DNA from: Octopus sinensis
Lineage: Eukaryota
Length of the DNA: 13,691 bases
Direction of reading: 5' to 3'
Assembly: GCF_006345805.1 (NCBI RefSeq)
Contig: NW_021826018.1
Location: 1-13,691, forward strand
Part shown: piece after piece, positions 1-13,691 of the stretch
Layout of the letters: each line of letters begins with the position of its first letter
Numbering within the stretch: position 1 is the stretch's first letter
Translations under genes and position numbers: made by a program
The notes under the pieces: model-generated
Databases searched by the model: none
Told to the model about the DNA's origin: nothing
Seen by the model: only the letters and a program-made list of their open reading frames with translations

Positions 1-301
1 GAATGTCAGAAGGCCGGTTTATGATAAAAGAAATTTAAGTTGAGATCACAAAATACAGCCGGTATTCGGAATAGTGGAGATCCGTGACATCTAAGAGGAA
101 ATAGAGTGATGACCTATGTGGTGAATTAAGACAAGAAGTTTTTCCGGTTTATGAGAATTTCGTTTATATCGAGAAGTCGGTTAGAAGAGTTGACTGTATT
201 AAATTTTTTTCACAAATTAAATATTCTTTTATTTCCATCTTGATCTTTATTTTAACTCTATTATTTAAAAATTAATCTTCAACAGTAAAGATTCGTTAAA
301 T

Positions 302-984
302 GATAAAGATTCTAATTTTCGCTCATTGTCCTTGATTTGTATCAAAATCTTTTTTCAGCAAATCATTATTTCCAATTGCAATTTCTTTCAATGTTTTTGA
401 AAAATTCCTTTCCATTCTTTCAAGATATTTGTCGTTTATAATAGTTTGATTTTCATACTCTTCATAATTCATCATCATTAAAATAAGAAATGTTGTATCC
501 TCTTGTTCGGAAAAAAAGCCATAAATAGTGACATATTTATAGATAACAATGAATTGAAATATTGTACTGATATACAATTTTTTATAAATCATCCACCATT
601 TTTTCTGTTTGTCTGTGAGTTCTTTTTGAATCCATCTGCAAATGGTTTGATTCAATGCTCCACTGTACCTGTGATTCTGAATGTCTTTATTTTAAATTCT
701 TCACATAATGACGTTATTTCTGATTAACAAATTCTGTTCTGTTGTCAGACCGCAGAATTTTTTGTGGAGAATAGGAAAGAAATATAGTTTTCAATGATTC
801 CGAAACTGTAACTGTTTCTTTATTTTCTACTTTTCGATCAAAGCAAAATTTTGAATAAATATCTATGATATTTATAAGATATTTATAGGAATCATTTATA
901 TCTGAAAAACGAAGATCGACTAAATCAACTTGATAGCTAAAAATAAACTATTGAATGACCGTCTCGAGGTTCTTTGGCTATATG
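302..984 (-). pseudogene. rve/DDE integrase (KRAB-A domain-containing protein 2-like, Ginger/TDD-type transposase), frameshifted, with a candidate 23-nt intron
   Basis: Manual minus-strand translation across frameshifts: HIAKEPR..YQVDLVDLRFSDINDSYKYLINIIDIYSKFCF...SLKTIFLSYSPQKILRSDNRTEFVNQ..ITSLCEEFKIK...GTVE..NQTICRWIQKEL...W..DL.KIVYQYNISIH...YLERM...LLKKDFDTNQ. The catalytic D (QVDLVD), D (SDNRTEF) and E (GTVE) motifs are in order. Confidence 0.85.
937..959 (-). other. candidate 23-nt spliceosomal intron in the integrase
   Basis: Minus strand gtcattcaatagtttatttttag is GT...AG and AT-rich, and separates EPR(E/D)R from YQVDLVD. One extra 1-nt indel nearby is still needed to restore the frame. 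Confidence 0.6.
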
Positions 985-1017
985 GTGACTAGTGAATATT
1001 TTGTCTTTAAGGACTAC

Positions 1018-1272
1018 ATGTTTCAATCTTTTTGACCTTTTTATTCATACTGTCTGCAGAGATGTAAGTGAATACATCTCGCTACTTCATTATGCCGTCG
1101 TAAGTAATCGCTGTTTAGCATTCGCCCACACCACACCTGGTAGCTAGATGGTCAACAGTTTTTTTCGCAGAGTTGCAATGTTTGCAATTCGTTTCTCCTG
1201 CTCCAAAGAGGAAATTGCGGTCTTGTAGTAACAGAAAGATGCTTCTGATCTCGGAGAGATGTTTCCAATGTT
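1018..1272 (-). mobile_element. non-LTR retrotransposon fragment (post-RT CCHC zinc knuckle leading to the restriction-like endonuclease; R2/R4/NeSL-type clade)
   Basis: Reconstructed GNISPRSEASFCY(L)QDRNFLFGAGETNCKHCNSAKKTVDHLATRC.RMLNSDYLRRHNEVARCIHLHLCRQY..KRSKRLKH, containing the C-x2-C...H...C knuckle and the RHNEV motif. Confidence 0.85.
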
Positions 1273-2426
1273 ATTATTTCTGTTTTCTATAAATTTCTAC
1301 AAATTCATTGGTGGTAACAGATTGGACTGAACATTCAAAATATAAGAAATAAAATAAGCCGGTTCTTCAGCCTGGGCGAATTTTTGAAAAAATTTTTAAA
1401 CGTATGTTTTTGCAGAATGTTCTTATTTCGCTGTCATTATAATATTTTCAGGTTTATATTTTTCCAATTTTGTGCAAATCACTGAAATAAAACAATTGAT
1501 TTCATCTTCAAGGTTTACGTCAATCATATAAGACTATCCGTGAAAAGTTCTTAAATTTATATTGCTCGGATTCTTATCGGGGCAGCGGTTCAATTGTAAC
1601 TTTTAGAAGACGATAGAACACACATGTGATGCTGATTTGACATTATATAGACCATACAACTTGTTCTTCACAAAAATAATTGCAATTTATTCAACTTCTG
1701 ACTATTCTTCTGCTTTAACATCAGCAATTAAAAATATCGAATATTTTACTCAATGATTTTCATTTTTTAAGTCTTTTTCTAAACGCCGACTTTTGTTAAG
1801 TTTATAGAGAAATATATCCAACAACGACATATACGCACAAATAAGGATTAAAAACAACAACTTTTATCAGATTTTACATCTATATATCTTGTTCGTTACA
1901 ACATACAAATACTTCCATTTGTAAATTCGAGAAAAGTTACAGATACTTTAATAACCAAGTAAATTTTTTCACAATTCTCCTTTAGATTTGTGGCCTCAGA
2001 TTGTGAGAATTCCTTCCTGGTATGTCGGTGTTATCCACAGCCAGGCCTGTCTGTACTTTAATAATCATGTATAAAATTGTCAGTTGTAGGCTCTATCGAC
2101 GGCTTATCCAAAAATTACAAGAAGGGATGGACAAAAAACATTCGTTTTCACTCGTTGAAGGTATTGCTATCGATGTGCACTGTGAGTGATATTTCCGATA
2201 ATTTTTTGCTCTTATTTGACGTGGCAGATAATGACTAGACATAATATTGACAGCTTTATTAATCTTCTTGCCTTGAAGGTTGCTAATTCCCCAGAACAAG
2301 CCTGAGTGGACTTGGACTGTTGGTTAAAATTATTCCTTCGAAGTATACTTGTCCTTTCAGTAATATTTAGACTTGTTGTGGATGAACACGGTCTTTCTGA
2401 CTCGTTCATAAGTTCAAGAGTTATTC

Positions 2427-2508
2427 CAAATTTATGGTTTAGTACACATTTAATGTTAGATTATTAGTATTTCAAATTTATGGTTTAGTACACATTTAAT
2501 GTTAGATT
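2427..2508. repeat. tandem duplication, 36-bp identical core, 46-bp period
   Basis: caaatttatggtttagtacacatttaatgttagatt occurs at 2427-2462 and 2473-2508. Confidence 0.95.
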
Positions 2509-4463
2509 TTTCGTTTTTTATACATTTATCACGGAGTGATGTGTAATGCACTAACTGACAGTTCATCCGTGATTTTCATACCAACAAGGACTGTTTTAAC
2601 TCAGATTTTGGAAACTATTAGTTGGTGGAGAATGTTTTGTAGGGGGAATGATGACATTTTTGGTTGTCTATGTTAAGGTGAAGAATGTATAGTTCATCTA
2701 GGGGTTAAAAGACTTGGGGAGTATTAAAACATTAATATTTTCTGTTTTGTGTCGGAATATTACTGGGCGTTTTAGGTTGGATGCCTTTAATTTGGGTCTA
2801 GATATCGTATATAACAACAAAGCATTCAATGCACGTGACATACTATTTGTATATTGTTATCTTTATTACTTAGGATGATTAAATAAGGTATTTTCTTAAT
2901 AAAGCTTTTTGAACTATTTTTGTGAGATATTATTCATATTAATGGTATTAATAATGGATAATTTACTATTTTTAATACATTGGTTAATTTGCCAAGTTTT
3001 AAGTTAAATTCAATAATAGAATGATCATGAAAAATATTACATTTTAATAAATTTTAAGGGAAGAATGGATATGAAGAGCCGATTATATGGTTTTTATCTC
3101 TTATTCAGAAAGAATAGAAAACAAAAAATGGTTTTGGAAAATATATTAAAATCCGGCTAGACAAGCTCCATTAAAATTATGGAATCGTGAATAACAGTTG
3201 TGGATGAAAAAACGATGAACATAGGATAATAAAAATATTTTTACAGAATAAAATTTTAAATTAATTAAAAGTTAGGATGTACAGAGGGGAAATAAATAGT
3301 TAATATTTTTGAGAAATTTCTGTTGGATTCTAACACTTTAAACAAAATTAAAGACTGTCTGTAATTTTAATAATTTATGTTAAAGAAAATATTTGTTCTA
3401 AAATTATGTTTTAATCAACAAAATTAATCATAATTTTAGGATTTGTCACGATGAAAGTTTTATAGAAAAAAAATTCTAGAAGTCGCTTTGATGATCACTT
3501 GAAGACTTCATTCGGAAATGCTTCCCAGCCCCGCTATCACTCTGTTAGGAATATTGAGGTTATCATGACATTTTACCGGCGATGAAATTCTTTTTTCTAA
3601 GAAATATATTGAGAGTGAATAAAGAAATATTTGAAAAGTCCTTGAATCAACGTCAACTCACATACCATCATTGACCCTTTATATATTTCCATTATCCTCA
3701 TATGTACTTTTGAGCCCGTGGGTAGTTTTAACTGAGACTAAAGCTTGTCACCAATTTAGTCCAATAGTAGTTAAATTTGATCCTCGTGTTTCAGGTGCCC
3801 GCATTAGAACCCGTCGAAATAGACATAAATCATGAGCGGTGAAATTTTATAATTACTTAGCAGCTTATGCGCTCAATGAACGGTGCATTCATATTTTTTC
3901 AAATCCTATAAAATCATTAAAATCACACTTGACATTAAAAAGGTTTTTTTTTCTATTAAAATTATAGATATTACGATAACTTTAAACAATGATAGCAAAC
4001 GTGGATCGACAGGGCTTCCTTTCTTGAGAAAGAAATTGCATATTACCAATGCTTAAAAATAATACAAATTATCATTAATCCGTCGGGGAGTGGTTATCGG
4101 TAAAAAATAACTTCTTGAAAACCACAAGGGCAGATCACATAGAGTTACGGACTCTCCACACATTCTTCCGTCACTTTTTATGTGAAAAAAGATTGTTATT
4201 AACATATCGTAGCAGAATCTAGTGAAATTAATTCAGAGCTTAATGTTTTTCGTCAAAATAATAAACCAAATTTAATCCTTCTTTGAATCTTCGTTATTTT
4301 AAATAGATTTCTTGTTAATAAATAAATTGAAAATTTATTTAAATTATCATCATGTAAATTTGAAAAAGTAAAACGTTTCGTAGTGAAATTGGCTTACGGA
4401 GACAACTTGAGAAAGTTTTGAAAAACTCTCAAAGTATCCTCTGCGCCCACAATCCGATGATCC

Positions 4464-4508
4464 TGAAGGAAATCTGTATTTGATCACTATAATGAAGGAA
4501 ATCTGTAT
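4464..4508. repeat. 16-bp direct repeat, 29-bp period
   Basis: tgaaggaaatctgtat occurs at 4464-4479 and 4493-4508. Confidence 0.85.
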
Positions 4509-5419
4509 ACACTGAAAGAGTGACTTCGGTGCTTTGTTTTTATCTTTCGTTAACGATTCTCCTTTTCGTTAGATTTTGGTTTTTTTTGGACAATAAAAAC
4601 AATTCTATTCCAAGGATTTTTAAAAATCAAGTTAAATAATTAATTATCGAATTATACTTATATATTTTCTAAAATATTAATTTTTTGAAATGAATAAAAA
4701 TATTGAATTATTATCAATAGCGTGTTCTGCACGCTTTCCTGTTGTTGTGTTGTTTTGTTTTTGTACGTTGATTATTACTTTTTATTCAAAATTTTTACAG
4801 TATAATTTATCTATTTGCATTTATTGCTGATTAAATATTGTTACATGTAGAATACCTTGAAAAAAGTTATTTTACAAGTCATTTGTGGCTATTGCCTCAT
4901 AGTTTAATCTCAATTGAATGCATCTTTTTAATGATTTTTTTCTATTGTATATATTCATTTTTATTGATATTTCATGATTTATCATTTTATTGTATTTTTC
5001 TTTGATCAAATTTGATTAAACTCTGTAAAATATTACTTTTTAATCTCTTTATTATTCACAATTCTTAAATCTTGTAATATTATTATTTAATTGAATCATT
5101 ATTGTTATATTTTTTTTCTAGATTTTTTTTAAACTGAACACGAATTTAATTATTGTTATATTATTTTTATAAATTATTATGTCACAGGCTTAGTGTGTAC
5201 CGAGCCTAGGTGGTTATACTTTCGGACTTGGAAAAAAATCAAAAAAAATATTTGAATTCTATTTCAAAATCTATTTTGTCAAGATAAATGTTATAAAATG
5301 ACAAGAACAGAACAGAATTTTTTATTGTAAAGAACAAGAGACTGGTACAGAAATATTTTTTGACGTCTATACAACAAGATGGTTGCTCGAGGGAGTCGAA
5401 CTGATTAGCCTCCAGATCA

Positions 5420-6164
5420 CACGAGGTTAGATGTGAAGCAGAGAATGTATCCCAGCAGGTTGCACCCCATACGAGGACATTTCGCTCTCAAATGGGAAAA
5501 GGGTGATCCCGTCAACTTTAAAAATTTCGGAATGATACTTTTTGGATTACTCAACAAATTTCGGAATGATACTTTTTATTATATATAATTTTTTCCCTTC
5601 AGAACTTGCAGCCAGATAGCTCAAGTCACGGTAAATGGACGTCGTCTTGGAAAACCTCTGACTACACAAGAAAGACTTCAATTGAACTGCGTTCAATGAA
5701 GGCATTAATTGGTAATCTGCGAGGGGAATCCAAGCGATGCCATATAGACCGTTAGCGGCAGTGGATAGACCGGTTCTAACATTAAAACGTAAAACTCGGG
5801 GTCTCCAATAGTCATAAAGTGACCTTGGGAAGAAACCCATGCATCATGGCATTGGGAGAAAACCACCGGAATGTCGTCTATGATTGAACCTGATTTCCAG
5901 ATTTGGTGGCACATCGGTTGCGAGATAAAGACGCGTTGTTGTCTCAAAGTCCTATCAGGTGTCCCTTCAGCCCTCTTCAATTGAAGACTTAAAGCGTTAC
6001 TCTCTGAGTGAGAGCACGCATGGCTGAAGGTTGACCAGACTTTTGAGGAGCAGAACGTTGTTTAGGAGGGGTACGCTTAGGTTTGCATTGGCGTTGAGCC
6101 TTAGACTTTTGGTTTTCGAAACACGCTGAGAACTGGAAGATTTGTTTGAAGAAGGAGGAGGCAT
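5420..6164 (-). pseudogene. endogenous viral element: single jelly-roll (T=3-type) capsid gene with basic N-terminal arm, frameshifted
   Basis: ATG at 6164. Joining ORFs 5997-6257, 5989-6183, 5705-5980 and 5547-5840 gives MPPPSSNKSSSSQRVSKTK.SKAQRQCKPKRTPPKQRSAPQKSGQPSAMRALTQRV.ALSLQLKRAEGTPDRTLRQQRVF...SGSIIDDIPVVFSP...SLYDYWRPRVLRFNVRTGLSTAANGLYGIAWIP.... This is a K/R/P/S/Q-rich arm followed by the SP...Y..WR...L.F...S.A.NG...I...P pattern of the S-domain strands. GC is clearly higher than in the flanks. Confidence 0.72.
5522..5577. repeat. 22-bp direct duplication inside the capsid remnant
   Basis: aaatttcggaatgatacttttt occurs at 5522-5543 and 5556-5577. Confidence 0.95.
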
Positions 6165-6186
6165 ATTGAGCCATCCCACCCATACC

Positions 6187-6666
6187 CTAACAATGTTCAT
6201 TTGACATATCAACGTTGTCAATTGGTTGTAGAAAAGTGTCCAATGCTTGTTTAACAACAGTTAAATAATGTTGGCGAGTTGGTCCTTTCATGGAGTCAAA
6301 TGATACATTACAAGGCTTATCTAAATCAGCCTGATGCGGAGATAAAGGCAACTTCTTAAACTTAGCGAAGAAGCTAGTCTCGCCAATACTTCGGCTGAAG
6401 ATAAGTTTGTTGTCACTCAAGACAATTAAGTTTGGAAAGGTGTTCTTTAATTGTTCGAAAAACGTAATCGTTGTCTGAAGATAAAAAGACTACGTCAAGT
6501 GCCTTTCACTAAAGAACTAAGCGGGGGTTGAACGGAATCGCTAACTTTCAACAAAGACATGAATTTTGGATAAAACATTCTATAACCTCGGAACAGCAGG
6601 AGAGTCAACACGTTCACACTGGTCTAACTTAGTGATCACCGAAATATCTTTAATATCCACCTAGAA
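6187..6666 (-). pseudogene. 3' part of an unidentified ORF directly upstream of the capsid gene (putative viral non-structural ORF)
   Basis: Open frame QTTITFFEQLKNTFPNLIVLSDNKLIFSRSIG...DNVDMSNEHC* ends at 6187, 22 nt before the capsid ATG. Composition matches the capsid region. No RdRp GDD or other motif was recognised. Confidence 0.45.
6659..6666. repeat. left 8-bp target-site duplication (acctagaa)
   Basis: Identical to 8835-8842, with the central TA (nnnTAnnn) typical of Buster elements. Confidence 0.97.
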
Positions 6667-6769
6667 CAGTGGTTCTCAAACTTTTTTCCTTGCGTACCCC
6701 TGCCATCTAAATAATTTTTCGCGTACCCCTTATCGATTTTTAAAAAATTAAGGAAAAAAAATATTTAAA

Positions 6770-8640
6770 TTAATGAGATGGATGGTGTTGTTTATCAATC
6801 ACTAATCTATCGATTTCTGGATCCTTTGACGAAAGACACACCCGAATATCATGAACAACATTCAGCCTCGCACGATGAACTGATTTTAAATTAAACAACG
6901 ATGAAAATCCTTGTTCGCAGAGATATGTAGTCGGAAAACAAAAGCAAAAAATCGATTATATAAAATCCAATATTGTGATATTTTGATGTCATTTTACACC
7001 AAAAATTCAATTAATGGTGCAGATTCAAATAAGATTTTTGACTCGTAAGAATTTATTAATTCAATAACTTCTTCTTGAATATTTGAAGGCAAAAAACTTA
7101 ACTTTTACGGAAAAAGGATTGACAAAAAACTTAAGATCTACTTCATTAATTTCAGGTATATATTTTTCAATTTCATTCTTCAATCCAAGTAAATGGGAAG
7201 TTATTTGATGTTTTAAATTTTCTATTTCATTTAATTTTAGATGGAAAATGTTTTCATTCAACTTATCAAACATAGTAAAATTAGAATTTGTTGTATTATC
7301 TATCCACAGTTGGAGCTTCATACGAAAAGACCTACAATATTGCATTATTTCGTAAAAAAACCTTGTTTTTTCTAAAAAGTCAACAATGGTAACTCCCTTA
7401 GTTTGTACCGATAAATTCAAAGCATTAATTCGCGAAAAAATGTCCGTTAAATAAGATAGCATTACACCCCAATACATATTTGATAACTTTGATAAATATA
7501 AATTTTTATTTTCGCGAAGAAAATATTCATAAATTTTTCATTCTTCAAACTGTGCACTCTGGAAAGAACATTTCCTTTGGATAACCATCGAACTTCTGTG
7601 TGATATAGTAAAACCTTCTCATCTGAACCAAATTCTTCACAAATTGAATAAAAAATTCGCGAATTTAAAGGACTTTTTTTGATATGATTGACAATTTTAA
7701 TAACATCGTCAAGAACATTTTTAAGTTCAAGAGGCATTGTCTTCACAGCAAGAACATAACGATGCAACATACAGTGAAGATGTTTTACATTTGGATTGAC
7801 AGATTGTACTCTACCTCGGAAACCAGAGTTACATCCAAGCATAGCTGGTGCTCCATCTGTGGTGCATGCACTAAGATTTTGCCACAATAGGCCTATCATA
7901 AGTAAAAAATCAAAAATGTACCTTCTGTTTCAAAAAAACAATTAACTGCATCGAAAATATCAGAACCTTTTGTGTTTAAAGGTAAGGAATAGTTGAACAA
8001 AAATTCTTCCTTAATATTTTCCATATAAATATATCGCACATAAACGAGTAACTGAGAGCAATTTGCTACATCTGTTGATTCATCCAATTGAATTGAAAAT
8101 TTTTTAAAGGCAGCACTTTTTATTTCAGTAATGACCTAATAATAATTAACCAGAAAATAACTTGTTCTTTTATGTTTTCGGATAGATCTCGTATTCTTCT
8201 ATTGACGGTATCATTTGAACATGGAATTTTTCGAACAATATGCTCCAATTTATTGCCAGGGAAACATTCAAACATGTCCTTAATGCACGGTATAATAAGA
8301 TTCTCGGCAATTGTATGTGGTTTTTTGGCTTTTGCGATCCGATATGAAATCATGTAAGAGAGTTTTGATAGTAAAAAATTAATGTCAAAATTGAAAGAAT
8401 CGTCTATTTTCCGAATATTATCTTTTTTGTTCTTAAAAAAGTCATTTGGTTTTCCGATAGTTTCGAAATGATTAGAAACTTGATGCCGAGAAAGTAATGA
8501 AGGTTTCATGGATTCAGGGCAAAGAATCTTTTGGCAAATAATACACTGCGGATGTGGCACACCGTTTTAATCACAAAATAAAATCCATAGTTGAGATAAC
8601 TATCGTTGTATTTTCGAATCTTGTTAACAGGTAAACTCAT
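6770..8640 (-). CDS. Buster/ZBED5-ZBED8-like hAT transposase, about 594 aa after removing 3 tiny introns and correcting 5 homopolymer indels
   Basis: ATG at 8640 (MSLPVNKIRKYNDSYLNYGF), BED-like finger PQCIIC...RHQVSNH, catalytic D in QLDESTD, D in TTDGAPAM, HCMLHR, VRWLS, E in FPTTYLCEQGFS, ending KQHHPSH-TAA at 6770. No in-frame stop codons in the reconstructed frame. Confidence 0.92.
7332..7361 (-). other. transposase intron 3 (30 nt, phase 2, in-frame)
   Basis: AAG|gtttttttacgaaataatgcaatattgtag|GTC. Removal gives FLEKTRSFRMKLQLW, matching the K..AF..KL.LW helix of hAT transposases. Being 3n and stop-free, it is not required for the frame. Confidence 0.65.
7893..7921 (-). other. transposase intron 2 (29 nt, phase 1)
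   Basis: GAAG|gtacatttttgattttttacttatgatag|GC. Splicing joins FFETE-G-LLWQNLSACTTDG and restores the frame between ORFs 7896-8087 and 7462-7899. Confidence 0.88.
8136..8161 (-). other. transposase intron 1 (26 nt, phase 0)
   Basis: CAA|gttattttctggttaattattattag|GTC. Splicing gives NIKEQ-VITEIKSAAFKKFSIQLDESTD and removes the premature stop. Confidence 0.88.
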
Positions 8641-8768
8641 AAGAAAAACTAGTAGCGTGGAGATTTATTTTATTATTAATTATTTAATTTAATTATGATT
8701 TTTATTATAATTAGAATTAATAACTTTTTTATGTTGAAACGAAAATTAAATAGATTTTCAAAAAATTT

Positions 8769-8818
8769 TCGCGTACCCCCTACAGAATTTCGCGTACCCC
8801 TAGGGGTACGCGTACCCC
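8769..8818. repeat. subterminal transposase-binding repeats, including a perfect 22-bp palindrome
   Basis: cgcgtacccc occurs several times. cgcgtacccctaggggtacgcg (8791-8812) is its own reverse complement. The same motif occurs at 6692-6700 and 6720-6729 at the other end. Confidence 0.9.
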
Positions 8819-8834
8819 AGTTTGAGAACCACTG

Positions 8835-8842
8835 ACCTAGAA
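8835..8842. repeat. right 8-bp target-site duplication (acctagaa)
   Basis: Identical to 6659-6666. Confidence 0.97.
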
Positions 8843-8960
8843 GATAAAGTCAAACGCGCATAGCGTTTTGAAAGATCAGTGAATGTTCAAAAGAATCCTT
8901 TTCAAGATTGAGGGTTTTTTCTGAAAATAGACAAGTCTTTTTGAATGGACACAAATGGAA
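8843..8960 (-). pseudogene. continuation of the sequence interrupted by the Buster element (upstream part of the putative viral ORF)
   Basis: The TSD shows this was contiguous with 6658. It reads ...SFKTLCAFDFIF*VDIKDISVITKLDQCERVDSP across the rejoined junction, with stops. Confidence 0.4.
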
Positions 8961-8968
8961 CGCTATAT

Positions 8969-9785
8969 CAGCCTGGCCAACCCAATCGCATCGCGGGCCA
9001 CTTTGTCCAATGAATCCTTTCCGCGGGCCGGCATATACATGTACATACTAAGGATAGATCAAAACACAACAGATAATATTTTATTTAGTAACATAGCATT
9101 CAGTCAATTATACGTATCAATGAGAAATCTGTTTTCCTTATCTTCACTTAATTTTTTCAAATCAACTTCACAATTACTAGTTGCACATCTATATTGGTTT
9201 TCTAAGTTTTTTATCTTTTAAAGAAGATCTATATATACTTTTACTAAACTTTAATTTCGAAAAGAATGATTCACATACGTAAGTAGATCCAAAGGAGCTT
9301 ACAACTCTTTGTGCAAAATTCTTAAGTTGGGATATTTTCTGCAGTCACATATTTGTTATAAAAGTCAATTTTGGATATAGTAGGATAAACAAGTCTTAGT
9401 TCACTGTTGCACTGTAGGGTCAATTATTTCCGTCTGCAAAGTATTTGAAAACAATAGAAACGTCAACATGAAATGGAGAAGAAAATGTTTCAAACCTTTT
9501 CTCATATTTTTTTAGTTCCGAGAATCGACTGTCAAATGCTGCAGCAAGATTTTTTATTTCATCAGCGTACTTGAAGAAATGTTTACAATGGCTGATTTTA
9601 AATTGATTTAGCGTGGAAAATGTTGATCATTTCCATTTCTTATTTGCCATTCAAACAATGACAATTTCATTCGAAATGCTTTGACTTGATGGCATGCATA
9701 GTAATAAATTATCCTGTCCTTGTAACTCCTTGTTTAATTGATTAATTTTTTCGGTTATATCTACCAAAAAGCACAGATTATCTAG
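8969..9785 (-). mobile_element. 5'-truncated second hAT element (SPIN / GTF2IRD2 / EPM2AIP1-like Buster-group transposase, C-terminal third plus 3' terminus)
   Basis: Reconstructed DNLCFLVDITEKINQLNKELQG...VKAFRMKLSLF...AFDSRFSEL...SPFHVDV...LQTEIID.QCNSEL...YPNL.NFAQRVVSSFGSTYVCESFFSKLK...QISH* (stop at 9117-9119). Terminus cagcctggccaacc at 8969, with gcgggcc subterminal repeats at 8993 and 9023. The flanking 8-mer cgcTAtat has a central TA. Confidence 0.88.
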
Positions 9786-10111
9786 ACTCTAGATAATAGT
9801 GGCATCTGGAGCAAGACAGCAGGATGTTGGTGTCCCCAAAGGTGTGCCATTAATGCGCGACGAATCTTAACGAAATGGTGAACAACGTCAAAGGACTCAA
9901 CTAAACTCTGATATTATGTCACATGGGTGATCAGACCCCTATGGACAACCTGCCTTTACGTGTTTCCATGGGCACTACATACAAATATTTACTAAAAGGC
10001 CAACTAATATAAAAGGCAAACGATACGAACTAATGATTGAACTTTAAAATTTTTGAGAAATGATGTTTTAATATTTGAACCATGCTTGCTTTAAAATAGT
10101 AAAATTATTTA

Positions 10112-10230
10112 CAACATAGCAATTATATGTGAATTATTTTTATTTTTGATAATATAATTGCAACATTAGCAAATTATTATGTGAATTATTTTTATTTTTG
10201 ATAATATAAATTGCAACATTAGCAAATTAT
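10112..10230. repeat. AT-rich tandem repeat, about 50-bp unit, 2.3 copies
   Basis: caacat(t)agc(a)aattat..gtgaattatttttatttttgataatata..ttg starts at 10112, 10161 and 10214. Confidence 0.92.
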
Positions 10231-10267
10231 AATTTTACATCCAATTTTTTGCAAAGTTTGTAACAAC

Positions 10268-11562
10268 TCTAACCTTAACCCAAACCCTAACGTTGGCAAG
10301 TGACAAGATAAATATATTCAAAATCTAACCCTAACCTTAACCCAAACCCTAACGTTGGCAAGTGACAAGATAAATATATTCAAAATCTAACCTTAACTAA
10401 CCTACACCCTAACGTTGCAAGTGACACATAAATATATTCAAAATCTAACCATAACCTTACCCAAACCCTAACGTTGGCAAGTGACAACATAAATATTCAA
10501 AATCTAACGACCCTAACCTTAACCCAAACCCTAACGTTGGCAAGTGACAACATAAATATTCAAAATCTAACCCTAATCCTTAACCCCAAACCCTAACGTT
10601 GGCAAGTGACAACATAAATATTCAAAATCTAACCCTAACCTTAACCCAACCCTAACGTTGGCAAGTGACAACATAAAATTCAAAATCTAACCCTAATCTT
10701 AACCCAAAACCCTAACGTTGGCAAGTGACAACATAAAAATTCAAAATCTAACCCTAACCCAAACCCTAACGTTGGCAAGTGACAACATAAATATTCAAAA
10801 TCTAACCCTAATCTTAACCCAAACCCTAACGTTGGCAAGTGACAACATAAATATTCAAAATCTAACCCTAATCTTAACCCAAACCCTAACGTTGGCAAGT
10901 GACAACATAAATATTCAAATCTAACCTAACCTTAACCCAAACCCTAACGTTGGCAAGTTGACACATAAATATTCAAAAATTCTAACCCTAATCTTAACCC
11001 AAACCCTAACGTTGGCAAGTGACAACATAAAAATTCAAAATCTAATCTTAACCAAACCCTAACGTTGGCAAGTGACAACATAAATATTCAAAATCTAACC
11101 CTAACCTTAACCCAAACCCTAACGTGGCAAGTGACAACATAAAAATTCAATATCTAACCCTAACCCAAACGTTGGCAAGTGACAACATAATATTCAAATC
11201 TAACCCTAACCTTAACCCTAACGTTGGCAAGTGACAACATAAATATTCAAAATCTAACCCTAACCTTAACCCTAACGTTGGCAAGTGACAACATAAATAT
11301 TCAAAATCTAACCTTAACCCTAACGTTGGCAAGTGACAACATAAATATTCAAAATCTAACCTTAACCCTAACGTTGGCAAGTGACAACATAAATATTCAA
11401 AATCTAACCTTAACCCTAACGTTGGCAAGTGACAACATAAATATTCAAAATCTAACCCTACCCTAACCTTAACCCTAACGTTGGCAAGTGAAACAAAATA
11501 TATCAAAATCTAACCTTAACCCAAACCCTAACGTTGGCAAGTGACAACATAAATATTCAAAA
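10268..11562. repeat. satellite of 23 units (mostly 48-62 bp): 3-5 telomere-like hexamers plus a constant spacer of about 30 bp
   Basis: Unit is (ctaacc/ttaacc/caaacc)n-ctaacg-ttggcaagtgacaacataaatattcaaaat. 23 gt(t)g(g)caagt cores counted by hand. The minus strand reads TTAGGG/TAAGGT variants. Confidence 0.97.
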
Positions 11563-12140
11563 CTAGCTCGGCAGCTCGCTTCGCTCACCGCGACCTAGCT
11601 CCTGCGGAGGGCCTGTTTCATCAACACAACTATAAGTTTATGTAGATTGATTATAAAACTACCTGGTTTAATGTAACCCTATTCTATCGCCTGTTGATAA
11701 ACGATGTTGTCGTCCGTCCTTCTTGGCATATATGAATAAATTTTCTCTTCTGCCTACCCTCGAGCATCCCACATACAGCCTGTCATATGAAAAGCACTCA
11801 CTCTCTAAAAATAACCCAACTACCTTTAATGACTGTCCCTGGGCCTTGTTTATTGTCATTGCAAAACTCATCCTCAAAGGAAATTGCAGCCTTTTAAATC
11901 TAAATAATAATCATTCATAAATTATCGAAATTCGTGGAATATAAACATCCTCACCTCTATACTTACCTGTTATATCGTCGCCTCTATTACGTTAGCCATC
12001 AAATTTTTGATAACTAACTTCGTTCCGTTGCATAATTTAGGTGGCGCAAGATTTCGTAATAAAAACACTGGAACGCCTATCTTTAACTTTAAAAGATGAT
12101 TCGGCATTCCAGAGGGATCTAAGGAGTTTAAAAATTCAAT
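11563..12140 (-). mobile_element. Helitron 3' end with RepHel C-terminal PIF1-type helicase fragment (frameshifted; stop at 11679-11681)
   Basis: [42 protein letters not shown]...IPRI...RLQFPLRMSFAMTINKAQGQSL...LYVGCSRVG...NIVYQQAIE*, then a GC-rich hairpin (11571-11591) and terminal CTAG followed by T at 11563/11562. Confidence 0.93.
11571..11591 (-). terminator. Helitron 3' rolling-circle termination hairpin
   Basis: Minus strand gcggt-ga-gc-gaa-gc-ga-gctgc, 8 nt before the CTAG end. Confidence 0.8.
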
Positions 12141-12589
12141 CCGGTTGAATTTTAGAAAATAACACAAAAATAAAGAAAAAAAAATATAAAAATGAATAAT
12201 TTAAAAAAAACAAAAAATAAAAAAAACAAAAAAAAACTTTAAAAATTTGTAAAATAGTATAAACACAAAAAAAATCTCTGCCGCCACGGCAACAACCAGT
12301 CTAATCTTTAACAGCCAATTAAGATAATGCTTAAGAGCCTTTATAGTCCGGAGATTTAGCTTAGTGACCTTGATTAGACAAACCACTGACGGAAATGGGG
12401 CAGCCGGAGATGCGGCAGGCAGAGGAGTAGCAGCAGCCAAAAAAGCGACACACAAAAAAGATTTAATTAATTACCTTTAACCTGACCGTTTTTCTTCAGC
12501 TTCGTTTTTCCTCCTTCGTTATCTATTGAAAAAAAAATTATTTTTAATAATAAAAAAGTTTAGGAAAAGAGGCATACCGAAATGAATTC

Positions 12590-13108
12590 TATCTTTACGA
12601 AAAACTTAACTAAATAGTTAATATTTTTACGCAATTCTTCTGATTGCTCTGTCAATTGGGGTAAATTGTGTAATGATTGTGCTAATGTGGTTTTAGCTAT
12701 CAAAGTGTTTTTCAAAATCTGTTAATTGCACACTCTATTCAAGGTCGTGCAATCTGTAATGGCACATTCTGTCAAAGTCAAATATGATATAGCTTTAATT
12801 TTGATTCATGGTCGATAATGATATATGCATCTAATTTTAAAAAGAAAATCTAGGATGAATTGAATTTCTTTATCGCGAATAATTGGGAGTTCATCATTGT
12901 TAATATTCTCGCTGTCGTTTTCATCAAGGATATTCTTAATACGTGAGATTTTTGCCTCGAAGGTTTTAATGGACCTCATCATGATGTCGAGGACATTAAC
13001 GTTGTTCATTTTAATCAATGCAGAAAATAATTTTTTGATTTTTGGCGGGAAGGTTTTAAGGACCTCATCATGTAAGTCGAGGACATCGTAGTTGTTCATT
13101 TTAACCAA
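12590..13108 (-). pseudogene. unknown protein-coding-like sequence whose 5' part is the 90-bp repeat
   Basis: ORF 12806-13108 (VKMNNYDVLDLHDEVLKTFPPKIKKLFSALIKMNN...ELPIIRDKEIQF) plus shifted downstream frames, e.g. QILKNTLIAKTTLAQSLHNLPQLTEQSEELRKNINYL. No family recognised. Confidence 0.35.
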
Positions 13109-13691
13109 AATGCAGAAAAGTTTTTTTTAATTTTTTTTTGGGGGGGAAGGTTTTAAGGACCTCATCATGTAAGTCGAGGAATCGTAGTTGTTCATTTTAA
13201 CCAAAATGGCAGAAAACTTTTTTTAATTTTTTTTTTTGGGGGGAAGGCTTTAAGGACCTTATCATGTAAGTCGAGGACATCGTAGTTGTCATTTTATACC
13301 AAAATGCAGAAATTTTTTTTATTTTTTTTTGGGGGGAAGGTTTTAAGAACTTCATCATGTAAGTCGAGGACATTGTAGTTGTTCATTTTAACCAAAATGC
13401 AGAATTTTTTTTAATTTTTTTTGGGGGGAAGTTTTAAGGACTTCATCATGTAAATCGAGGACATTGTAGTTGTTCATTTAACCCAAATGCAGAAAAATTT
13501 TTAATTTTTTGGGGGGGAAGGTTTTAAGGACTTCATCATGTAAGTCGAGGACATTGTAGTTGTTCATTTTAACCATAATGCAGAAAATTTTTTTTTAATT
13601 TTTTGGGGGGGAAGGTTTTAAGGACTTCATCATGTAAGTCGAGGACATTGTAGTTGTTCATTTTAACCAAAATGCAGAAAATTTTTTTTTA
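12959..13691. repeat. tandem array, 89-97-bp unit, about 8 copies, runs off the window end
   Basis: The t(c/t)atcatg anchor occurs at 12976, 13065, 13162, 13259, 13352, 13443, 13533 and 13627. Length variation lies mainly in the T and G runs. Confidence 0.97.

Follow-up and report, generated by a model that had tools for sequence, protein, structure and literature searches.

A Buster/SPIN-type hAT transposon with introns of host size, probably from a dicyemid genome within the Octopus sinensis assembly

The window analyzed here is a stretch of 13,691 nucleotides (nt) from a contig labeled Octopus sinensis (NW_021826018.1, positions 1 to 13,691; assembly GCF_006345805.1). It contains a complete DNA transposon of the hAT superfamily, of the Buster/SPIN type, bounded by terminal inverted repeats (TIRs) and by target site duplications (TSDs). 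The transposase gene of this element is split by three short segments that begin with GT and end with AG. We think it likely that the element, a hAT DNA transposon of the Buster/SPIN type, has been active recently, that its introns have the size usual in its host, and that the host genome is that of a dicyemid, present inside the O. sinensis assembly. Its features are listed in Table 1.

Read on the strand of the element, the TSD is TTCTAGGT, in agreement with nnnTAnnn or NYYTARRN, the target consensus of Buster and SPIN elements; the SPIN inverted repeat is CAGYGGTTCTCAACCT (PMC3014272, PMC3499496). The TIR of the element, CAGTGGTTCTCAAACT, is one base apart from that of SPIN, and its two perfect matches in the window compare with 0.01 expected by chance. 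The conceptually spliced transposase gave 865 protein matches, the best of them with E = 3.6e-191, 51% identity and 99% coverage. Named matches were ZBED5/8-like, SCAND3-like and FAM200-like proteins, which are Buster derivatives, and the matched proteins carry the domains PF14291, PF27073, PF27046 and PF05699. Against SPIN, TcBuster and the derived ZBED5/8/9, SCAND3 and FAM200 proteins, the transposase is 40-51% identical over 99% of its length. The sequences LDESTD, CTTDGAPAM, HCMLHR, EVRWLS and TYLCEQGFS fall on conserved columns of the homolog alignment, and the LDESTD, TDGA, CxxH, RW and YLCE motifs, like the 8-bp TSD of the nnnTAnnn/NYYTARRN form, are common to SPIN, TcBuster and the element. 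The TSD, the TIR, the homology over the full length and the Asp, Asp and Glu residues together with the CxxH and RW motifs thus place the element, on sequence grounds, in the Buster family of the hAT superfamily, as the initial annotation had proposed for the transposase. A Pfam scan of the spliced protein with a local library gave no significant match, but the control P0001, a relative of the transposase, also matched only weakly, and the null is therefore not evidence against the assignment. A sequence search of the PDB with the transposase returned no match, and an exact look-up of the open reading frames (ORFs) of the window found nothing recorded. In comparison with SPIN and TcBuster, the element is very AT-rich (its coding sequence has 31% GC) and compact (2.16 kb). 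The subterminal GCGTACCCC repeats near both ends are probably transposase-binding motifs.

Three GT-AG segments had been described within 7332-8161, in phases 0, 1 and 2, and we found them exactly there, on the minus strand and with the same phases. Their removal was said to restore conserved motifs, and it does: the joined sequences KEQ/VITEIK, ETE/G/LLWQNL and EKTR/SFRMKLQLW (slashes mark the junctions) align without gaps at all three junctions with 54 Buster/ZBED5/SCAND3-like proteins. The 10 extra residues that segment 3 would encode occur in none of the 54; their presence in homologous proteins had been named beforehand as an argument against splicing. All three segments have GT..AG on the sense strand, for which the chance with three arbitrary inserts is about 4e-7 even when sliding of the boundaries is allowed. 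All three also lie in an AG/G or AA/G context, and their GC content is 19-23%. As far as can be judged from such features, the three segments behave as spliceosomal introns.

A search with a C-terminal fragment of the transposase led to P0121, a RefSeq protein labeled Octopus sinensis that is encoded on two other contigs, here L001 and L002, whereas an N-terminal fragment led to P0132 and from there to a third contig, L003. We compared the window with the copies on these contigs (full in L001 and L002, truncated in L003), all of which are labeled Octopus sinensis (GCA_006345805.1). The accessions of the three contigs are VCDQ01001555.1, VCDQ01008156.1 and VCDQ01008304.1. The full copies are 99.2-99.4% identical to that of the window, the L003 copy ends at window position 7524, and the differences seen by BLAST are almost all insertions or deletions (indels) of 1-2 nt. 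Absence of the segments from other copies would have spoken against introns, but every recovered copy retains them: introns 1 and 2 do not differ among the four, and intron 3 is found in the three that reach that far, with one T differing. It is this T that decides the fate of two earlier claims. Intron 3 had been taken as 30 nt long, a multiple of three, that could yield two protein isoforms. The length of 30 nt is private to the window, which has an extra T, and the isoforms fall with it, intron 3 being 29 nt long in L001 and L002.

Relative to a consensus of about 2.16 kb, each copy has 1-5 substitutions. Indels of 1-2 nt number 0-11 per copy and lie almost without exception in short base runs. 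The window copy has five additional frameshifts (positions in Table 1), which are private to it and lie in or beside short A/T runs. Indels in short base runs are typical of errors in long-read assembly, and the O. sinensis assembly is PacBio-based according to the title of the cited source. The private frameshifts of the window copy are probably errors of this kind. In the majority consensus the introns are of 26, 29 and 29 nt, and an intact ORF of 593 amino acids (aa) that ends with TAA appears only once they are removed; its 593 codons contain no nonsense codon and no other damage. Removal of the three segments is thus enough for a full ORF in the consensus, but not in the window copy, which keeps its five further frameshifts. 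The RefSeq fragment P0132 supports the start codon of exon 1 and the reading VIKNGVPHPQC, and P0121 has an unbroken C-terminus in two other copies. Incomplete splicing of the consensus is predicted to end translation at codon 173 when nothing is spliced, at codon 239 when only intron 2 is kept and at codon 412 when only intron 3 is kept. Perfect TSDs flank the element at different sites in the window and in L002, where the duplication is ATCTACAG on both sides. The 8-bp flanks of the L001 copy differ (TTTTAGAG at 8438-8445 and GTGTAGAT at 10606-10613), which could be due to recombination between copies or to misassembly. The copies are young, as had been suggested, with only 1-5 substitutions against the consensus, but this youth does not necessarily extend to the introns. 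Judging by the consensus, the family may still be active.

Table 1. Features of the Buster/SPIN-type element and of its transposase gene (positions of the window; slashes mark intron boundaries).
Feature	Position	Strand	Details
hAT transposon, Buster/SPIN-type, complete, 2168 bp	6667..8834	-	TIRs and TSD; BLAST identity of 99.0-99.4% to the copies on L001-L003
TSD, left copy, 8 bp, ACCTAGAA	6659..6666	.	same as 8835-8842
TSD, right copy, 8 bp, ACCTAGAA	8835..8842	.	same as 6659-6666
TIR CAGTGGTTCTCAAACT, 3' end of element	6667..6682	+	perfect, 16 bp
TIR CAGTGGTTCTCAAACT, 5' end of element	8819..8834	-	perfect, 16 bp; the relative in L005 starts with the same 13 nt
Subterminal GCGTACCCC repeats, 5' end	8771..8818		at 8771, 8792, 8810 (+), 8803 (-)
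Subterminal GCGTACCCC repeats, other end	6692, 6721		two more repeats
Exon 1	8162..8640	-	ATG at 8640; N-terminal zinc-finger-like region PQCIICxxxL..H..H; window: one A missing at ~8569
Micro-intron 1, 26 nt, phase 0, GTTATTTTCTGGTTAATTATTATTAG	8136..8161	-	caa/GTTATT..ATTAG/gtc; identical in 4/4 copies
Exon 2	7922..8135	-	first catalytic Asp motif SIQLDESTD (8090-8070)
Micro-intron 2, 29 nt, phase 1, GTACATTTTTGATTTTTTACTTATGATAG	7893..7921	-	aag/GTACAT..GATAG/gcc; identical in 4/4 copies
Exon 3	7362..7892	-	CTTDGAPAM (second Asp, 7863-7849), HCMLHR, EVRWLS; window: two extra A at 7537-7538
Micro-intron 3, phase 2	7332..7361	-	aag/GTTTTT..TGTAG/gtc; 30 nt (T7) in window, 29 nt (T6) in L001 and L002
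Exon 4	6770..7331	-	PTTYLCEQGFS (catalytic Glu, 6925-6908) and hAT C-terminal region; stop TAA (6772-6770); window: broken at 7095-7097, 7005, 6938

Genes on the related contigs have introns of the same size. On L003 (VCDQ01001555.1), a contig of 892 kb, the gene for GANAB (neutral alpha-glucosidase AB) is found at about 3290-5100 on the minus strand, 5-7 kb from the element. This gene, whose introns we count as at least ten, reads as a continuous protein of 518 aa only without ten GT-AG segments, which measure 24-27 nt (mean 25.6); the protein is then colinear with residues 224-733 of mouse GANAB (E = 1.2e-192). An aspartyl protease gene of L003 (about 13600-14770, minus strand) has introns of 24, 25, 25 and 29 nt. 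A second young hAT family, unrelated to the first (DUF659 match) and with the TIR TAGGGCAACCAA, is present in L001 (16092-17953) and in L002 (16695-18558, reverse strand) as two copies that are 98.9% identical; one continuous ORF of about 460 aa is obtained only by taking out four GT-AG segments of 23-26 nt. The introns of this family were placed by hand from conserved motifs; an automatic minimal-intron path gave biologically wrong introns. Because GANAB, the aspartyl protease and the second hAT family all have introns of 23-29 nt, micro-introns are the norm of this genome, and the 26-29 nt of the element compare with 24-27 nt for GANAB (n = 10) and 24-29 nt for the aspartyl protease. As a separate observation, aspartyl protease genes of L003 occur as a tandem duplicate (13676-14407 and 16187-17153), about 72-86% identical at the DNA level.

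Two further genes on these contigs stand out. The RPL13e gene of L003 (11647-12168, minus strand) is unusually divergent in sequence and has a 58-nt intron through which the NCBI model reads. An Ets-domain gene of L001 (13800-14411, plus strand) is intronless and very divergent, with an in-frame TAG in place of an expected conserved Trp; either the TAG is a base error or the gene may be a pseudogene. The RefSeq models on L003 (11647-12168 on the minus strand, 10001-10471 and 10797-11108) and on L001/L002 (10001-10501) are fragments or read through micro-introns. They include XP_029655941.1 (RPL13-like), XP_029655940.1 and XP_029654853.1 and are labeled as octopus proteins in both RefSeq and UniProt. 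Several other repeat families are common to the loci, and the window shares an old long interspersed element (LINE) fragment with L001.

Cephalopods are not expected to have introns of 26-29 nt, and dicyemids are the only metazoans reported to have introns so short. One dicyemid, Dicyema japonicum, has O. sinensis as its natural host. Introns of Dicyema have a median length of 27 bp, with two thirds below 30 bp (PMC6543705), and a dicyemid intron length of 26.2 +/- 1.9 nt has been given (PMC2222250). Dicyema japonicum has been collected from Octopus sinensis (PMC6736024). The introns of the element, with their GT-AG ends and their 26-29 nt, lie in this published range; they differ from dicyemid micro-introns in sitting in a mobile element, at positions uninterrupted in all homologs, and in being more AT-rich than the introns of host genes. 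Given the intron-size signature, the metazoan genes (Ets and GANAB) and the octopus label of the assembly, the most economical reading is that dicyemid DNA within the octopus assembly makes up the contigs and probably the window as well. A literature search for dicyemid contamination or for transposon transfer between dicyemids and octopus found nothing. Protein clusters of neighboring genes had a single member or only proteins labeled O. sinensis, and did not point to an organism. If the attribution is right, O. sinensis reference contigs that reach at least 892 kb, and the RefSeq and UniProt proteins derived from them, for example XP_029655941.1, XP_029654853.1 and XP_029656784.1, would be of dicyemid origin, several of the models reading through micro-introns. 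Contigs mislabeled in this way could mislead cephalopod comparisons and create false signals of horizontal transfer.

Several observations weigh against the interpretation of the element as a recently active transposon of a dicyemid genome. The window itself is without a host gene, and its tie to the micro-intron genome consists of the shared young element and one old LINE fragment (79% identity). The introns of the element have 19-23% GC, against 32-44% for those of GANAB, and are slightly longer. As deposited, each of the four assembled copies is broken (that of L002 by one missing A in an A-run), and the indels of the copies could be real mutations, in which case the family would be dead. 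Finally, protein searches across the junctions found unspliced RefSeq fragments only, and no spliced product.

The last two points would also be expected if the segments were unspliced insertions in non-autonomous copies that an autonomous Buster element, related but without introns, mobilizes in trans, and cross-mobilization is common among hAT elements. It would be surprising, however, if each of three independent insertions had GT..AG ends on the sense strand (p ~4e-7) and the size of a host intron, while the consensus remained undamaged over 593 codons. Moreover, the second hAT family on the same contigs repeats the pattern, and an intronless copy was recovered in none of four cases. We therefore regard mobilization in trans as unlikely.

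Even less probable, in our view, is that the true host is Octopus sinensis, with an octopus spliceosome that handles exceptional micro-introns or with a recent horizontal transfer of the element from a dicyemid parasite. The related contigs, one of them of 892 kb, are all deposited and RefSeq-annotated as O. sinensis, and contact between parasite and host is a classic route of transfer for SPIN and other hAT elements. The 892-kb contig, however, has housekeeping genes with at least 14 introns of 24-29 nt, unlike the gene structure known from cephalopods, and octopus as the true host was rejected on these introns of the L003 host genes. That the NCBI models run through the small introns suggests that they have no octopus RNA support; the divergence of the RPL13e and Ets genes is unusual, and amplification in octopus would need a transposase that can be spliced there.

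That the segments are assembly artefacts or internal eliminated sequences (IES) of ciliate type, as the many homopolymer errors of the assembly or the length of 26-30 nt of both IES and introns in Paramecium might suggest, can be dismissed as very improbable, and a ciliate host with Paramecium-type IES was rejected: introns 1 and 2 are the same on four different contigs and intron 3 recurs in all three copies that reach it, the sole TA-to-TA excision of intron 1 that leaves one TA removes 21 nt and leaves the frame unrestored, TAA closes the ORF, and metazoan genes (Ets and GANAB) are present on the contigs.

If the element belongs to a dicyemid-like genome, its introns were most likely gained there, within this transposon lineage. 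The two closest relatives inspected at the DNA level, P0001 (51% identity; 1797 nt) and P0008 (49% identity; 1698 nt), are single uninterrupted ORFs, in line with the earlier statement that characterized Buster transposases such as TcBuster and SPIN are uninterrupted; the element of P0008 has the same TIR start, CAGTGGTTCTCAA. In contrast, three introns of 26-29 nt interrupt the transposase gene studied here, and with single ORFs in its closest relatives, the simplest history is a gain in this lineage. The proposal that a transposon gained micro-introns in its host is plausible in this respect, although the small size of the introns is the norm of the host and not a peculiarity of the transposon.

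The initial annotation had pointed to local duplication, from the likeness of GTTATT at the start of intron 1 to GTCATT at the start of the next exon, but none of the three introns resembles its flanks more than shuffled versions do, and this origin was abandoned. As in introners, or in gain by tandem duplication of AGGT, the introns are flanked by short direct repeats (GT, AGG and AGGT), which are due to their protosplice AG/G(T) contexts. Unlike introners, they have no significant similarity at the flanks and form no intron family, and with 26-29 nt they are too short for transposons. An introner-like origin was rejected, with no repeated family among 20 introns (maximum z score of 3.3 in 190 pairs). 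The best of these 190 pairs joins intron 1 (8136-8161) to the GANAB intron of L003 at 3543-3567 (GTTGTTCTTTGGTTATTATTGGTAG), with about 77% identity and z = 3.3, which is not significant. The AT-richness of the introns matches the composition of the element itself.

In the mechanism that we propose, the spliceosome of the host, adapted to introns of about 25 nt, would remove the introns of 26, 29 and 29 nt, and splicing would give a 593-aa transposase with its Asp, Asp and Glu motifs intact. This transposase would act on the terminal repeats and produce 8-bp duplications, as in other Buster elements. Failed splicing would lead to truncation, so that active transposase would depend on a spliceosome able to handle very short introns. 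Most animal spliceosomes are not known to remove introns below 30 nt, and it seems a fair inference that the dependence on splicing would block the formation of active transposase in ordinary hosts. Control of transposition at the level of splicing, raised in the initial annotation, may occur, but no sign of splicing that is regulated or specific to a tissue was found here. The active transposases of the Drosophila P element, maize Ac and medaka Tol2 also need splicing, as would that of the present element. Retention of the third intron of the P element leads to an N-terminal truncated protein, and intron retention in the present element would do the same. The introns of the element differ from those of the P element, Ac and Tol2 in their length of 26-29 nt, which would be set by the unusual spliceosome of the host. 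With a Buster element that depends on the splicing of introns below 30 nt, the adaptation of a mobile element to a single unusual host lineage, and perhaps its confinement there, can be tested on a concrete case; the element is also a possible example of intron gain. For the rest, it is an ordinary transposon, with introns that are ordinary for an extraordinary host.

A broader proposal, which we put forward only tentatively, is that two unrelated hAT families of a dicyemid genome each gained three to four micro-introns (23-29 nt, in protosplice contexts), while their relatives elsewhere are intronless. If this were true, dicyemid transposons would be a natural system in which to study how an animal has recently gained introns. 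By preventing active transposase wherever introns below 30 nt cannot be spliced, the introns would lock the host range, and their retention could yield truncated proteins with the DNA-binding region only, which might repress transposition.

The rest of the window contains decayed elements and satellites. The C-terminal half of another Buster-like transposase, broken by stops and frameshifts, is found at 9060-9830 on the minus strand (LQCNSELRL at 9391-9417, STYVCESFFS at 9258-9287). A retroelement integrase core (QVDLVDLRF...) and LINE C-termini (KTVDHLATRCG; VLVWGATCWDTF) have left remnants at 717-947 and 1130-1162, both on the minus strand, and at 5405-5514. The LINE-type fragment at 5405-5514 is 79% identical to L001 15111-15221. 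The C-terminal remnant of a helicase of the Helitron/Pif1 type (FAMTINKAQGQS), with a frameshift and an in-frame TGA, is located at 11671-12200 on the minus strand. Two satellite arrays occupy 10265-11562 and 12959-13691; one has a 60-nt unit in 23 copies, with telomere-like CCCTAA motifs, and the other a 94-nt unit in about 8 copies that reaches the end of the window.

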